Part shown: positions 15,721 through 60,100 of the stretch, one piece after another
Layout: each line of letters starts with the position of its first letter
Numbering within the stretch: position 1 is the stretch's first letter
DNA from: Tetramitus jugosus
Taxonomy: Eukaryota > Protista > Heterolobosea
Assembly (NCBI GenBank): GCA_937625935.1
Contig: OW569345.1
Span: 620,001 to 684,000, forward strand
Direction: 5' to 3'
Length of the DNA: 64,000 nucleotides
The notes under the pieces: generated by a model
Seen by the model: the letters and a program-made list of their open reading frames with translations, nothing else
Databases searched by the model: none
What the model was told of the DNA's origin: nothing
Made by a program: the position numbers and the translations under genes

Positions 15721-16377
15721 AGGGTTTACTCGAGAGAATTTTACTCTGTTTTTTAGCATTTACTATTCAAAGTGATCAATCCTCACATCATTGTCAAGAA
15801 CGAAGTCAGGAAAATCATCTGATTGGTTTTGCTTTCTTACTGACCCGTCCACTTGGTGATCACCTGACTTTGAGCATCCTTGGTTGGAGGTTCGAAATTC
15901 TCTTTTTCCAACATTGTATTTTCAGCTCTGGTTGCCAAAGGAGATCAAGATCATTCACAAACAAACTGCACCTACTGCACAGATTTCAATCACATGAACA
16001 GCAGCCACACCCCATTAGCACGAGATGATTACCTTGTTCCGGAAGGAGGAACGTCCCGTTCGAGACACTTGTCTCGTATTTTCCGTCACCGTCACTCTTC
16101 CCCAGATACTCGTAGATTCACCTGGTCAAGCTCCGCCGACCTTCCAAAATCCAAACAGAATCCACTACTCCTTGAGCAACAAAAGGAATACCACCTGACT
16201 CACAACCATCAGCAACAACAACCACACTCGGCATCGTCGACTCCTTCTCCTGCTTCTTCGTTCATTTTTTCTCCGCCTGCTCCCCAACAACAACAAAATT
16301 TTTATCCATCCCCACCACCGCCTGCGCAACTTCACTATCATCACTACCACCAACAGAAGAATCATCGCAAGAAAAAA

Positions 16378-17109
16378 ATGGGTCATTTTCTGTCCAAGCT
16401 TTTCGGCAGCGCCGATCACAATGATCATCAAAACAACAATCAACAAACAAAAATTGCAAATCAACATGACCAAGCCATTCTGGACATTAAGATTACACGA
16501 GACAAAATCACAAAGTATCAAAAACAATTGGAAGTGCTCATGAACAGAGAACTCGAAATTGCCAAATCTCTGTTGGCGGAGAATAAACGCGATCGCGCCA
16601 AATTGGCTCTACAAAAACGGAAATATCAAGAACAGTTGTATCAAAAAGCAACGGCTCAGCTTTCCAATTTACAACAAATGGTTCAACAAATTGAGTTTGC
16701 TCAGATTGAATCACAAGTTGTGAATGGTATTCGAATGGGTAAGGATGCTCTCGTTGCCATACAAAAAGAAATTGGTAGCATTGAACAAGTGGAGCAACTC
16801 ATGGATGAGACAAGAGAGGCCATTGAGTATCACAATGAGATTTCTAGGGTGCTGTCAGAGAATTTGACACAAGAGGATCAAGAAGGTGTGGATGAAGAGT
16901 ATGCAAAGCTTGTTGATTTGGTTTCTTTGCAACAAGGAACAACTGCAACGGTAACGACAACAACTATAACAACAACAGCAGAGAAAACGGGAGAAGCTCT
17001 GGATCAAATTGTAGTTCCAGTTCATGTGCCAAAGCCACAGGAACAAGTCGAAGAAGAAGAAGAAGAAGAAGAAGAAGTATCAACAGACAGAGTCGCTGTT
17101 GCTCTGTAA
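16378..17109 (+). CDS. VPS20: ESCRT-III subunit Vps20/CHMP6
   Basis: Myristoylation-type start MGHFLSKLFG; DQAILDIKITRDKITKYQK, RDRAKLALQKRKYQEQL, IEFAQIESQVV, EQLMDETREAIEY; acidic tail. Confidence 0.92.
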   Translation: MGHFLSKLFGSADHNDHQNNNQQTKIANQHDQAILDIKITRDKITKYQKQLEVLMNRELEIAKSLLAENKRDRAKLALQKRKYQEQLYQKATAQLSNLQQMVQQIEFAQIESQVVNGIRMGKDALVAIQKEIGSIEQVEQLMDETREAIEYHNEISRVLSENLTQEDQEGVDEEYAKLVDLVSLQQGTTATVTTTTITTTAEKTGEALDQIVVPVHVPKPQEQVEEEEEEEEEVSTDRVAVAL

Positions 17110-17417
17110 TCTGTGAACGTTGTGTACATGTATAGATCAAACAGATGATAAATTATTTCTGATATCAGATAACTATTTGCTATCGATCAGTCTGACTAAA
17201 TATCCTTGCTGGGATTTTGTTGTTGACCTTTCAACGGTATTCTGCAGAAAATTCCCGGAGTGCACCCGGGCGTGGACAGGTGAGGTGACTCGTGGAATCA
17301 TCGACACACCCCCGCCTGCTCGGAACCACCATTCGCTAAAACATCCTTCACACATAACCAAACAAAAAATTCAGAACTCACAAACAGTATTAATATTCAA
17401 TAACAAACAAATTCAAT

Positions 17418-18913
17418 ATGATGACATATTCTAAAACACTGCGTACGGTGCTGCTTGCTCTCGTCGTTGTTCTTGCATTTTTCTTGCCTCAAATGACCAC
17501 TGCCGTGGATTATCCAGAGTGTGATGCCAACAAGTTTTCCAATGAAGTGAAACCGAATATCCTGATGGCCTCTACCAATGAACAATTCATTGGTTATACC
17601 GAAGTGAGAAAATTGGCTGAAGAACTTTTGATTAAACCCATTTTGAATCCTAGTGACTATGTTGGCTTGTTGGGATCCAAGAGAGGATTGCTGATTTATG
17701 GACCACCAGGAACAGGAAAGGTGAGTAGTCGTATGAATAGTTATATAAGCTATAACAATTGTTGTTATTTGTTGTTTTTTATGAAATTCATTAGAAATGT
17801 ACTGACTGTCTCTCCATGGTGTGGGAATGATGATAAAAGACTTTTATGGTTCAGACAATGGTGTCTCAGTTGAATAACTTGGGCTATGAAGTTTGGAAGA
17901 TTACCTACTCTGATCTTTGGAAGCAAGCTTTTGTTGGAGAGGGTCCTCAAAGATTGAATTGCTTGTTCGACCGTGCAGAGGCACAAAAGAACGTTGTGCT
18001 CTTGTTTGATGAGTCAGAGCTCATCTTCCGCTCCAGAGAAACCAAGACTGATGAATACTCGAGTCAATTGTTGACCATTGCGCTCAATCGTCTTCACAAG
18101 AATGCCAAATTCAAGGCAATTCTCATCACCAACTTCCCTGGTGATGTCGATTTTGCCATCCGTAGACGATTCGGAAATCAAGTGTGTATCCGATTGCCCG
18201 ACCCTGCTGAACTGAAGCAAATGTTCTGCTCCAAGCTTGAGAGTGATAACTGGTTCTTTGATTCCTCATTCGTCTATGATCAATCAGGTCTCAATAACAG
18301 ACTCCAACTGTTCTCTGGTGATGACATTCAGAGACTTGCCGAACGTATTGCTTTCACAAAAGCAATGGGTGCCACTCAATCCCCTGTCAGAACAAAGACT
18401 GCACCAATCAATCTCCCAGATATCGAAGCTGCGTTGACACAGGTGAGACCAACTTCTACTGCCACCGAGTTGGTTCAGTATGCTCTGTACAGTGCCAAGT
18501 ACTCCAACTTGTGCTTCCAAGAGTATTTGCCAAAGGACAGCAGAAAATTGGCTGAAGCTAAGGCCATTTTCGATGCTCAAGAGAACTTGTTAGGCATTTC
18601 CTCTGGAGCTTTGAAGCCATCTGATCTCATCGAGCTCAGAAAGACAGTAGACAATGTGTTTGCTGCTCAGAAAGCTGAAGACGCAAAAGCATTGACCCAT
18701 GTTACCGATTGCACACGACGCTTCTCAACAGGTGTAAACAAGACTGGAATTGCTATCGGTGTTGGTGTTGGTGTTATAGTGCTGGTTTTGGTTGCTTTTG
18801 TCTTGGGTGGTGCTGGCTTGTTCTTGTTTGTCAAGAAAGCCAAGGTTCCAGTCTCTTTGGCCACAGACGCCAGCTCTAACTATGTTCAAATGAAGGATAT
18901 CTCAACACACTAA
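17418..18913 (+). CDS. Vps4/katanin/spastin-clade AAA ATPase with signal peptide and C-terminal TM; 2 exons (17418-17720, 17840-18913), 458 aa
   Basis: Intron 17721-17839 (GTGAGT...AAG) restores Walker A GPPGTGK/T; Walker B VVLLFDE; sensor-1 ILITN; DFAIRRRF; FSGDDI; hydrophobic N-terminus and C-terminal TM followed by KKAK. Confidence 0.85.
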
Positions 18914-19081
18914 GTGTTGTGATCCATTCTTCCATTTATGCTTACAATAAAAGGTCATCATAACTATTTTTAGGTACTTTTTCCATGTGGTGAAGATCAA
19001 CAACAAAACAAGCACACAAAAAACAAGAACTTGAGAGTTGATCATCACCACCAAAAAACAACAATAGAGAAATAGAAAATA

Positions 19082-19393
19082 ATGAGAGTTTTTAAAGTTG
19101 ATTCCATATATGATGCCGAATTGAAAATATGGAGAGTCGATTCCAGATATGATGCCGATGTTGCCGTATTCATGGTGACTTCTCAATGGGACGATGAAGG
19201 AGAGTTGTTGTGGTATCACGTGCCAAGCAAATTTGATGAAGCTCTCAAGATTTACTTTGTGGACAGTCCTTATGACGCCGATATCAAGATTCAGTTCGTG
19301 CAATCCAAGTTTGACGTCGAATGGTTGAACGAAGAGAAGAAGAATTTGTTGGTGAACAATTCCAAGTCTGTTGAAGAGCAACTCAAGGAGTAA
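19082..19393 (+). CDS. DUF6150-like tandem-repeat protein (candidate 7_1 septoil-knot family)
   Basis: Six ~13-aa repeats of the type (K/R)hxxVDSxYDAD, ending WLNEEKKNLL. Confidence 0.75.
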   Translation: MRVFKVDSIYDAELKIWRVDSRYDADVAVFMVTSQWDDEGELLWYHVPSKFDEALKIYFVDSPYDADIKIQFVQSKFDVEWLNEEKKNLLVNNSKSVEEQLKE

Positions 19394-57130: not shown

Positions 57131-60100
57131 TTATTGTTCGTTACTTTGAACCACCTTCATTTCAATTCTTGTATCATTATTCATTTCATCATGCGCAGTT
57201 TTGGCCTTGCTCTTGGCCAATGTTGGACGTCCACATAGCATGAATGCCAGGAATGCACCAACCAACATGAGAAGCAACAAGACAATGGCAAGTGGAATTC
57301 CAAGACCTAGACCCACACCGAGGCCAATGGCAGTGGCACGAGAATTGGTCTTTACAGAGTTGGGAGAATCTGGCGAAGGAGGTAAAGAGATTAACTTGTC
57401 ATATGTGACCATGACAAATGATGGTTCATCTCTGGTTGAAACTGTACAGGAACAGGTCACATTGTGAGAAGATGCTCGGACAAGGACACATACATTGTCA
57501 TCTTGCATCCACATTCTACTCACATTGTCAAAGTATGTACAACGAGGTTCAAATTGTTCCTGTTCTTGTAACATGGTTCTTCTGACAACAGGTATTGAAG
57601 CCGGGATGGTAATCCTCACATTATTGATATGAGCTTTCTCAAGTGTGGTGTAAAGTTGAGCAGAAACAGCAACTGCAGAAACAATTGTTGAGTTGATAGA
57701 CTCTTGATAAGAGGAAAGAATGGAGGGAATGTGAGCTGTGGAGAGGATCTTGGAGAGCACAAATATATCTTCATCGTTCTTCTTCCATTGGTCAAGAGAT
57801 ACCGTATCAGAGGAGGATATACCTATTTGATCATTGCCTTGCATTGGAATGGAAGCCAAGAATTTGGTTTGAATCAACAAATCACTTGAGAACATTGAAG
57901 AGAACAATCTAACATCATTGAATCCTCCATAAATCTCATTGGAGTTCAATTCTAAGCCATGAGCAACAAGGGTTTGAATTTCATCCAATAGCGAAACAGA
58001 GATAGAAGCAGGATTGGTGAAGACTAATTGATTGAGCATCTGAACAACATTCTGAACAATGTTGCTAAACTTGATCTGACGAGGTGGAGAGGATGACATG
58101 GCATTGATCATCATTTTCTTACATTCAGCAACTGTTATTTGTGTCATTGACATGAGAGATGCGATGGTCTCTTGTGTCAACATGTTGACCTCATTCTGTG
58201 ATGGTGTATACTTCAATGAATTTGAACTCAATTGCTCAAATAATGATAGATCAACTCCTTGTTCCTTTACAATATCTCTAAAGAGTGATTCTGTGACTGT
58301 TACCATTCTTTCAATCATTGCACTTTGGTTATTCGAAGAAGAAGACACTCTTCTTAATTTTGGTTGATCGTTTCTCAAGACATGAACGACAATGTCACTC
58401 AGAATCATCCAATTTCTGAGTCCATGATATCCATGATTATTGACCAGATCGAATTCATTCACTACATCAGACACTCTGTCGATGAGCAACGCATCTGGTT
58501 TAGAAACTGTGATCCTTTCTACTGTTTGTGATTGAGCACCAAATCTGTCTCTCACAGTTAAGATAAGTGAAAAGTTTCCTGCAGGTAATTTCGTTTTGAG
58601 AGAAGGTTCAACACTTGCACTAAAATGGAACAATGAGTCATTGAACTCATCGGAATTCAAAGTCCATTGATATGTAAGTGGTTCATCTGAATCAATCCAT
58701 CCAGTTGCCAAAAATTCAAACTCAGTGTCCAAAGCAACTCCGCTCTTGGGTTCCACTTTAATTATTCCCGAATGTGGTGCGGTGTTAACACTGAATCTAG
58801 TGATGGAAGAACCAGTTCTATTCTGTGAATCTGTGCATCTGACTTCTAGAGCATATGTTTCACCTGGAATCAGACCAGAGGAATAGAGAGACAAACTGTT
58901 CTTCATCATGTTTCTCACCATGCTTGTACTAATGATCGAATCATTGAGCAACCAGTGACAAGTGTATGATGTCTGTGCTTGAGTTCGAATTGTGAATGAA
59001 ATTGTAGGTGAGGCTTCTTTGGAGATGTAGAACCCTGGTGTTGAGGTGAATGCTACAAGTGGGATAAGGGAACTAGTTGCCTGAACAATGATACAATCAC
59101 TATCAGATCTTGATGCAACATTGAATGCGACACAGAAGTTGTACGAGTTAGATTCAGTCATTGCCCTTGGAGGAATTGTCACAATAGCACTATTGACAGA
59201 ATTTAGAGCATTAAGTATAGAAGGAGGGCATTGACTACCAATGGAGCTCATACTACACTCCCATGAATAAACTGGTCGAATAGAGAGTCTCTCCGGATCA
59301 AAACATGAAGCTTTGAGGAGCATTGGAGAGTCAAATGCTACACTTCGATCACCACCCTCAATTGAAGCAACCAAATCTCTCATCATTACCTGAACAACCA
59401 CAGTTTGAGTGAGGACTAAGGTACTCTGCGATGTTGTCACTTTAAACTCAAATTCATAACTTCCAACTGATTGGAATGCGTTTGGTTCGAAAATCAAATC
59501 AGGCCCAGACACTCTTCCCTTAGCAGACAGACCAGATAATTGATTCCATGAATATTCCAAAGTTGATCTTTTGTCAACTGGTAAACAAGAGTCAAATTGA
59601 GCATATCCATTCAAAGCAAAGCTTTGAGCGATAAAAGTCTTTTGCGCAGATGGTCCCCCAATATTAATGAACAAGTCAGTCAAAATGTCATGGGATCTTT
59701 GTCGTCCAAAAGTAATTGGTTGTGATGGAACACCACTTTGAGTTGTTACAATTAATTGGAATTGAATGATCTGTCCTCTTTCCATCATTCTTGCTGGAAT
59801 AGTTGCTATAGACACTGTTTGGTTAGCTAAAATCATATTGATCTGAGTTGTGTTGGGACCCACAGCTTTCCAGCTGTACAACAATGGTTCATTTCCATTG
59901 TGTGAGTATGAAAGAGATCCATTCAGAACCAAATCGCTACAATAGGTAAAACTCTGATTGACGGGCATGATAGCCACAGGTCTCAAATGTTCGCATTGGA
60001 CACCAAAATAATCAGTTTCACAAGCACATGAATCTGGTGCTCTGCATTCTCCATTTCCAGAGCATGTGGATGAATTATCTGCAGGGATCTGGAAGCATCT

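Follow-up and report, generated by a model that had tools for sequence, protein, structure and literature searches.

The window examined here is a 64,000-nt stretch of the Tetramitus jugosus genome (Heterolobosea; assembly GCA_937625935.1, contig OW569345.1, positions 620,001 to 684,000 of the forward strand), numbered from its first letter. At 17418-18913 on the plus strand it carries a two-exon gene whose 458-residue product is a complete AAA ATPase motor of the classic clade, preceded by a predicted signal peptide and followed by a predicted transmembrane (TM) segment. A preliminary description of the window had proposed a luminal or extracellular topology for this protein, and the evidence gathered below points the same way. 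The features of the gene are as follows.

17379-17417 (+): 5' untranslated region (UTR) of 39 nt or more, free of upstream ATGs (leader of the cDNA contig L032; RNA contigs start at 17406-17460)
17418-17720 (+): exon 1 coding sequence, 101 amino acids (aa), terminating in the Walker A GPPGTGK (translation; equals residues 1-101 of the L032 open reading frame, ORF)
17418-17504 (+): predicted cleavable signal peptide, 29 aa, with K6 and R9 in the n-region, an h-region of 14 residues and a site between TTA and V (hydropathy, layout of homologues)
17508-17522 (+): DYPEC, with the first family-conserved Cys, at the start of the mature protein (alignment A1; the homologous segment of P0002 is modelled with a predicted local distance difference test score, pLDDT, of 88-94)
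17700-17720 and 17840-17842 (+): Walker A GPPGTGK, with its final T supplied by exon 2 (translation)
17721-17839 (+): intron, phase 0, 119 nt, GTGAGT..AAAG (GT..AG), immediately following the codon of the Walker A Lys (RNA contigs, L032)
17840-18913 (+): exon 2 coding sequence, 357 aa and stop, whose opening Thr codon (17840-17842) completes GPPGTGKT (translation)
17930-17944 (+): pore loop 1, FVGEG (translation, alignment A1)
17993-18013 (+): Walker B, VVLLFDE (translation, alignment A3)
18119-18133 (+): sensor-1, ILITN (translation)
18119-18172 (+): second region of homology (SRH), from sensor-1 to the arginine fingers, without the two-residue insertion (alignments)
18149-18172 (+): arginine-finger motif DFAIRRRF (translation)
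18308-18514 (+): lid (LFSGDD...) and C-terminal helix, closing in the family-conserved SN-x-C (AlphaFold2, AF2, models; sub-threshold Vps4_C; structural alignment)
18419-18514 (+): C-terminal helix, DIEAAL...YSNLC (translation)
18527-18736 (+): helical stalk of about 70 aa between AAA module and membrane, with a membrane-proximal Cys (AF2 helices, low confidence)
18737-18745 (+): NKT, the sole N-x-S/T sequon (translation)
18746-18832 (+): TM segment of 29 residues, Gly-rich at its start (Kyte-Doolittle values up to 3.13 in windows of 19 residues; AF2 helix 301-324)
18833-18910 (+): predicted cytosolic tail, 26 aa (translation; disordered in the AF2 model)
18833-18844 (+): KKAK, adjacent to the membrane (translation)
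18881-18892 (+): YVQM, a YxxPhi motif (translation)
18914-18955 (+): 3' UTR, to about 18955 (RNA contigs end at 18916-18955; a contig from an oligo-dT library ends at 18955)

The gene model is established by transcripts. RNA contigs were drawn from four runs of four studies, namely three metatranscriptomes (two from soil and one an oligo-dT library) and one presumed RNA run of a named organism. Contigs of all four runs skip exactly the 119 nt of the intron with its GT..AG ends and are continuous from 17406-17460 to 18916-18955, which confirms the splice that had been predicted from the letters. A metagenome scan with the family alignment A4 retrieved a natural spliced mRNA contig of 1419 nt (L032), consisting of a 39-nt ATG-free leader and a 458-aa ORF. 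Its first exon is identical to that of the window, and 6 of its 458 residues differ, all conservatively and all in exon 2. A different 5' exon had been named as an observation that would overturn the model; no joint to any other 5' exon was found in the contigs of the four runs or in L032. Searches were run exon by exon, and full-length analyses used L032. Variants in the four runs amount to 26 synonymous and 7 nonsynonymous changes over 312 and 1062 sites, respectively (ratio of nonsynonymous to synonymous polymorphism per site, pN/pS, ∼0.08), and the replacements are conservative and fall in a lid loop, the TM segment, and the tail. A genomic contig from a related strain (L012) is 97% identical to the gene overall. 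Among the matches listed in a search of sequencing runs, 20 rows from 15 studies contained the window gene, many of them soil metatranscriptomes. On the basis of the RNA contigs, L032, and the low pN/pS, the gene is real, expressed, polyadenylated, and under strong purifying selection.

The encoded protein is a complete classic-clade AAA motor, with Walker A and B, the pore-loop aromatic residue, sensor-1, and the trans-acting arginines. The L032 ORF matched the Pfam family AAA (PF00004) with 77.5 bits (cutoff, 21.2; E = 1.7e-21) over profile positions 1-130 of 131, and exon 2 alone matched with 49.7 bits (E = 6.5e-13). All of the motifs listed in the preliminary description (GPPGTGKT, LLFDE, FVGEG, TN, and DFAIRRRF) were found where it had placed them, and these motor motifs are invariant across the family described below and its cytosolic relatives. 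In alignment A3, E58 of Walker B, T97, N98, R109, and R110 are invariant and D57 is conserved in at least 90%. The aromatic residue of pore loop 1 (Y, F, or W) and the following G-E are kept in every family member that covers them, the loop reading F-V-G in the window protein and Y-V-G, W-N-G, or W-S-G in homologues. Pfam scans of exon 2 and of the L032 ORF gave no match to the MIT domain (PF04212) at E values up to 0.1-1, as the preliminary description had noted, and revealed no N-terminal substrate-recognition domain; only ∼65 residues separate the predicted cleavage site from Walker A.

To which AAA proteins is this motor related? The AF2 model of the homologue P0002 (pLDDT, 87.5; predicted template modelling score, 0.83) was compared with known structures using VIA-align. 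The top one-domain matches were spastin (6p07_B; Z = 25.5, root mean square deviation [rmsd] 3.1, 286 residues aligned), katanin (6b5c; Z = 25.1), FIGL1 (4l15; Z = 25.0), and Vps4 (6bmf_B; Z = 24.9). These alignments cover ∼275-286 residues at an rmsd of ∼3 Å and span residues ∼27-323 of P0002, including the extra C-terminal helix; domains of p97, Drg1, and VAT lie within one Z unit of the best matches, which amounts to a tie. Foldseek gave katanin and FIGNL1 as best matches, with Msp1/ATAD1 also among the structural neighbors, and the best single-domain match by sequence in the PDB was FIGL1 (124.9 bits). The two-residue insertion that p97 and the proteasomal ATPases have in the SRH is missing (HMMER alignments to p97; alignments A1 and A2), and the SRH is of the RRF type rather than R-P-G-R-F-D. 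Absence of this insertion is a marker of the meiotic clade. The preliminary description had reported a Vps4_C-like helix. A helix is indeed present at that place, and helix 306-319 of the P0002 model falls inside the stretch (up to residue 323) that aligns with spastin, katanin, and FIGL1, but the Vps4_C profile stays below its Pfam cutoff, scoring 12.2-15.1 bits against 21.3 in window exon 2, P0002, and P0162, always at the same position.

Placement of the protein in the Vps4/katanin clade, which the preliminary description had also proposed, fared less clearly. Fold matches and SRH type agree with it, but in a maximum-likelihood tree of 53 domains (LG+C20) the family forms a monophyletic group (support, 100/100) whose stem, 2.4 substitutions per site in length, attaches outside the meiotic clade. 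In an approximately unbiased test, grouping the family with the meiotic clade was not rejected (log-likelihood difference, 2.0; P = 0.45). An affinity with the Vps4/katanin/spastin clade is thus plausible: it fits fold and motifs, and the phylogeny neither shows nor rejects it. The protein is certainly not Vps4 itself, because it has no MIT domain and the genome encodes its own Vps4 (contig C48).

The relatives of the window protein form a small family without a protein name. An exhaustive HMMER search of 1.84 billion protein representatives returned 1933 AAA proteins at E ≤ 0.001, only 7 of which, including the query, reached E ≤ 1e-30, and a word-indexed protein search with exon 2 matched only exon 2 itself. 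The true relatives are P0002 (43% identity), P0003, P0004, P0005, P0006, and P0016, with the cluster mates P0151, P0152, P0153, P0154, and P0162, which makes about seven clusters from protist metagenomes and metatranscriptomes. They derive from JGI, ENA, Logan, and one NCBI whole-genome shotgun contig, and the GC contents of three of their contigs (26%, 50%, and 55%) differ so widely that several organisms must carry the family. The family profile retrieved its members at E values of 1e-169 to 1e-72, double-ring Cdc48-type proteins at 1e-59 or weaker, and single-module Vps4-like proteins at ∼1e-33. Annotated homologues of known function, which the preliminary description had listed as contrary evidence, were not encountered in these searches. 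A feature search of the ESM Atlas gave only generic AAA clusters, all below 0.9. The metagenome scan also returned a locus at 29% identity (L034); a further candidate, L036, was a false positive and encodes a bacterial methyltransferase. P0003 (L019:1150-2571, from the organism with 26% GC) is intronless and has, between Walker B and the helix that follows pore loop 1, a low-complexity insert of ∼130 aa rich in N and E.

We then considered the N terminus. Signal peptide and topology calls were made by eye and script with the von Heijne −3/−1 rule and the positive-inside rule. In the window protein, hydropathy measurement bore out the basic n-region and the h-region ending in TTA that had been described; the TTA site has small residues at −3 and −1 and an acidic flank after it. 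Seven distinct N termini of the family were compared: those of the window protein, P0002, P0152, P0162, P0003, and P0016 and the first exon shared by P0006/P0154. All seven have the layout of a signal peptide, yet they are mutually unrelated in sequence. Their n-regions hold zero to two basic and no acidic residues before the h-region, their h-regions measure, in the order given, 14, 11, 12, 10, 14, 18, and 11 residues, and their sites with small −3/−1 residues read TTA, SNA, VSG, SYA, SLA, TFA, and VMA. A neutral or acidic stretch follows the site in all seven, and none has a basic C-terminal flank. P0002 and P0152 present one mature protein (94% identity overall) behind two unrelated leaders. 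Alternative first exons may explain this, as may a very recent duplication of the gene within one environmental organism. In the AF2 model of P0002, residues 1-26 form a detached low-confidence helix and the confident fold begins at about residue 27, near which the structural alignments with spastin, FIGL1, and katanin likewise begin. As a control, calreticulin of the same genome, which ends in HDEL, begins in the same way as the window protein: its n-region is six residues long and includes a single Lys (MVSQSK), its h-region measures ∼16 residues, and a site lies between VAA and E.

Conservation of the character of the leader without conservation of its sequence argues for signal peptide behavior, and from this layout we infer that the signal peptide is cleaved after TTA. 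The preliminary description had named an uncleaved N-terminal anchor of the Msp1 type as an observation that would speak against its topology. Such an N-out anchor would require a longer span, with basic residues on the opposite side; the window protein has its basic residues in the n-region, an h-region of only 14 residues, the TTA site, and an acidic flank.

At the other end of the protein, the AAA module is modelled by AF2 from exon 2 at a pLDDT of ∼85-94. Two helices of low confidence (232-251 and 260-297) come next, then the TM helix (301-324), and the tail is disordered. The stalk region (18527-18736) was matched by no homologue outside the family in the HMMER search. The NKT sequon, TM segment, KKAK, and YVQM of the preliminary description are all present at their coordinates; the sequon is probably not usable, because it abuts the TM segment. 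A search for the same layout among homologues had been suggested, and one of them, P0005, ends in a TM segment followed by KFKKENDGYQHL, that is, basic KFKKE and GYQHL with its YxxPhi motif, which gives it the same type I layout as the window protein. A Gly before YxxPhi, as in P0005, resembles lysosomal targeting signals. No family member ends in HDEL/KDEL or KKxx. P0002 is soluble, and its sequence is complete, because its contig extends 170 nt beyond the stop; a TM segment is likewise lacking at the ends of P0162 and P0003, and no downstream TM exon was found in L020 and L021. The large neighboring surface-type protein at 57131-57700 (−), whose TM segment had been likened to that of the window protein, does resemble it: its TM segment starts with a Gly-x-Gly-rich stretch and has a long span of hydrophobic residues, and the cytosolic tail is short and basic. 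The N-terminal part of this neighbor contains RCC1-like repeats.

The cysteines follow a pattern of their own. The window protein has six between the predicted cleavage site and the TM segment, the number given for its ectodomain beforehand. Four of them are kept in the family and are absent from the cytosolic relatives in our alignments: that of DYPEC and those of QRL-x-C (in the helix after pore loop 1), Q-F-C-x-R-L-P (strand 5), and S-N-x-C (after the C-terminal helix). The extra two, a lid-helix Cys and a Cys of the membrane-proximal stalk, occur as a pair in the window protein, P0005, and P0154, and both are missing in the P0002 group, P0003, and P0016. Complete mature sequences therefore have either four Cys (P0002, P0162, and P0003) or six (the window protein). 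This even, co-occurring pattern is what disulfides would give.

Taken together, these features suggest that the window gene encodes a 458-aa type I membrane protein whose entire AAA module is exoplasmic, in the secretory or endocytic lumen or at the cell surface. We consider this topology, which is predicted from the sequence, somewhat more probable than its opposite; it is also what the preliminary description had proposed, and none of the three observations that would have contradicted it (an Msp1-like N-anchor, another 5' exon, or many annotated homologues of known function) was made. The mature protein would form a ring like its spastin-, katanin-, and Vps4-type relatives, and six C-terminal helical stalks would hang this ring from the membrane; a complex prediction with three copies of residues 30-335 scored 0.22, below the 0.32 mark, and so speaks neither for nor against a ring. 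Because substrate enters at the N-terminal face in the relatives and the stalks are C-terminal, the ring would turn its entry face to the lumen and its exit face to the membrane, opposite to the orientation in Msp1 and FtsH. Luminal ATP would then drive the pulling or unfolding of luminal or surface proteins, an ATP-dependent ring that grips polypeptides being the simplest expectation for a motor whose residues are intact and conserved. Since there is no HDEL or KKxx signal and the tail has a YxxPhi motif, the protein would be expected to leave the ER and to cycle between the plasma membrane and the endosomes, lysosomes, or phagosomes of this bacterivorous soil amoeba. Members without a TM segment would be soluble luminal or secreted versions.

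The most far-reaching reading goes beyond this topology: a previously unrecognized eukaryotic family of classic (spastin/Vps4-like) AAA unfoldases would act as ATP-driven exoplasmic hexamers in endosomes, lysosomes, or phagosomes or at the surface of phagotrophic protists. Tethered by their C-terminal stalks and with their entry pores turned to the lumen, these would take apart proteins of the lumen or of prey. We put forward this combination tentatively, at a probability of about 0.35. Several points weigh against the exoplasmic motor that we prefer. Densities of 0.78 sequons and 1.48 Cys per 100 aa compare with 0.56 and 1.34 in the cytosolic AAA paralogues of the same genome, i.e., there is no enrichment, and the single sequon of the window protein lies against the membrane; the homologues P0005 and P0003 are rich in sequons. 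Both flanks of the TM segment are basic (RR and K before it, KKAK after it), and TM segment and tail were seen in only two members, the window protein and P0005. Little ATP is available outside the lumen of the ER and Golgi, and conditions in acidic compartments may be unfavorable for an AAA motor. Finally, a change of activity is conceivable, given the very long branch of the family.

Could the motor face the cytosol instead? An uncleaved Msp1/ATAD1-like N-out anchor combined with a C-terminal tail anchor would put both ends in the membrane and leave a cytosolic AAA that extracts membrane proteins. The structural similarity to Msp1/ATAD1, the basic residues on both sides of the C-terminal TM segment, and the lack of sequon or Cys enrichment are all compatible with this arrangement. 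However, the h-regions measure 10 to 14 residues in six of the seven N termini, too short to cross a bilayer, basic residues precede the h-region, and small −3/−1 residues follow it in all seven. Several homologues with the same N-terminal layout have no C-terminal TM segment, and a 26-aa tail with a YxxPhi motif after the TM segment has meaning only in the cytosol. We therefore regard a cytosolic motor as quite improbable. A motor in the ER or nuclear envelope lumen, taking the role of torsins in an organism that has none and held in the ER by partners, would share the signal peptide evidence with the endosomal or surface motor that we prefer. Of the exoplasmic compartments, the ER lumen is the one whose supply with ATP is well established, and Torsin (PF06309) gave no match in the 26-Mb assembly or among the Pfam matches of the L032 ORF. 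Against it, the window protein lacks the HDEL end that calreticulin of this genome has, as well as a C-terminal KKxx; both TM-bearing members have YxxPhi, the soluble members are also without a retrieval signal, and arginine fingers and pore-loop aromatic are kept, unlike in torsins. This ER role seems unlikely to us.

An exoplasmic location could also be combined with a different activity, that of an ecto-ATPase or of a nucleotide-dependent switch or scaffold that threads no substrate. The long branch with its family-specific changes and the lack of an N-terminal substrate-recognition domain would suit such a protein, whereas conservation of the pore-loop aromatic and G-E in every member covering them, the invariance of both trans-acting arginines, and a fold that aligns over its whole length with substrate-threading relatives favor an unfoldase. 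We assign little likelihood to a protein that does not thread. An artifact, with signal peptide and AAA exons taken from different transcripts, or a decaying, nonfunctional gene is refuted for practical purposes: contigs of four RNA runs and the full-length L032 join the exons in frame, pN/pS is ∼0.08, both exons match the same paralogue, and the family is conserved.

How does the proposed unfoldase compare with known systems? Spastin, katanin p60, and FIGL1 likewise have one AAA module, whose fold agrees with that of the family throughout, N-terminal helix and extra C-terminal helix included (Z of ∼25); a pore loop of the V-G-E-G type and an SRH of the "RRR-hydrophobic" type are also shared. 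In contrast to them, the family has no MIT or microtubule-binding N-domain, shows only 20-24% identity, and has a signal peptide, four Cys of its own, and, in some members, a C-terminal TM segment. Vps4 shares the AIRRRF motif and the weak Vps4_C-like helix, and Vps4-like proteins are the nearest single-domain matches of the family profile (E of ∼1e-33), but the window protein has no MIT domain, a sub-threshold Vps4_C, and a predicted location on the opposite side of the membrane. Msp1/ATAD1 is also a membrane-anchored single-module classic AAA; it has a long uncleaved N-anchor and a cytosolic motor with its entry face to the membrane, whereas the window protein has a cleavable-looking N terminus, a C-terminal anchor, and a motor predicted to be exoplasmic. 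Other AAA(+) motors that work at or beyond a membrane are the FtsH/Yme1-type AAA proteases and HSP101 of the Plasmodium PTEX. The former are anchored N-terminally and include a protease domain, and the latter is an AAA+ protein of the ClpB type with two rings; a single spastin-like AAA module combined with a signal peptide and a C-terminal anchor is seen in neither.

To our knowledge, every classic-clade AAA protein characterized so far (Vps4, katanin, spastin, fidgetin, Msp1, p97, NSF, and the proteasomal ATPases) acts in the cytosol, in the nucleus, or, at organelles, facing the matrix or intermembrane space. In the secretory pathway, torsins are the AAA+ proteins accepted as luminal. A full-text literature search found no report of a signal-peptide classic AAA in the secretory lumen; the papers on luminal AAA+ proteins that it found concern torsins. 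Torsins are signal-peptide AAA+ proteins of the ER and nuclear envelope lumen and the textbook precedent for a luminal AAA+ motor (e.g., PMC4358337, PMC6646356). According to abstracts of these papers, they depend on LAP1, an external activator that has a conserved arginine (PMC4358337), and threading of substrates by them is improbable (PMC6646356). They belong to another AAA+ lineage, and, unlike them, the window family retains its own arginine fingers and pore-loop aromatic. The motor is of a known type; what is new here is the family, together with its predicted compartment and the geometry of its anchoring. If this is correct, ATP-driven protein unfolding would also take place in the endomembrane lumen or outside the cell, and questions would arise about the source of ATP, the substrates (phagosomal prey proteins or luminal aggregates), and the working of a ring tethered by its exit face. 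The soluble member P0002, ∼330 residues without its signal peptide, is suited to biochemistry, and the family is expressed in soils.

The genome comprises 26.35 Mb in 56 contigs (GC content of the window, ∼41%). Among named proteins with full coverage, those of Naegleria fowleri and Willaertia magna come nearest to its Cdc48, at 80% identity each, in keeping with a heterolobosean source; environmental sequences reach 89-94%. A search of the genome gave no close paralogue of the window gene. The best one, on contig C11, is 28% identical and is matched by both exons. The intron after the Walker A Lys codon (GPPGTGK followed directly by gt, phase 0) lies at the same codon in eight of the nine other classic AAA paralogues (L022, L023, L026, L027, L028, L029, L008, and L010) and is shifted by one codon in the paralogue on C11. 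The eight are, as we presume from motifs except for Vps4, two Vps4-like, two katanin-like, two spastin/fidgetin-like, one Pex-like, and one ATAD2-like gene. The position thus looks like an old one kept across AAA subfamilies, and its sharing indicates that the window gene is a native eukaryotic paralogue and not a recent import from bacteria. A bacterial origin was rejected also because the high-scoring bacterial proteins with four to six tandem AAA domains owe their scores to summed domains and form a separate clade. These giants (P0007-P0013, from Marinobacter and Betaproteobacteria; e.g., Marinobacter azerbaijanicus WP_285388223.1, 1815 aa) carry classic AAA domains and make up a tight clade of their own. 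No clear Msp1 orthologue was retrieved from the genome; a candidate on C37 proved to be a proteasome Rpt-like subunit.

Two further ORFs flank the gene. A Snf7/Vps20-like ORF at 15880-17109 (+), 270 nt upstream, has a long His/Gln/Pro-rich N-terminal extension and belongs to a separate transcript; a Vps20-like neighbor is absent beside the P0003 homologue in L019. Downstream, a small repeat ORF at 19082-19393 (+) is covered by RNA contigs from ∼19065 onward in three of the four runs (X1-X3, not X4), at depths of 14-101.

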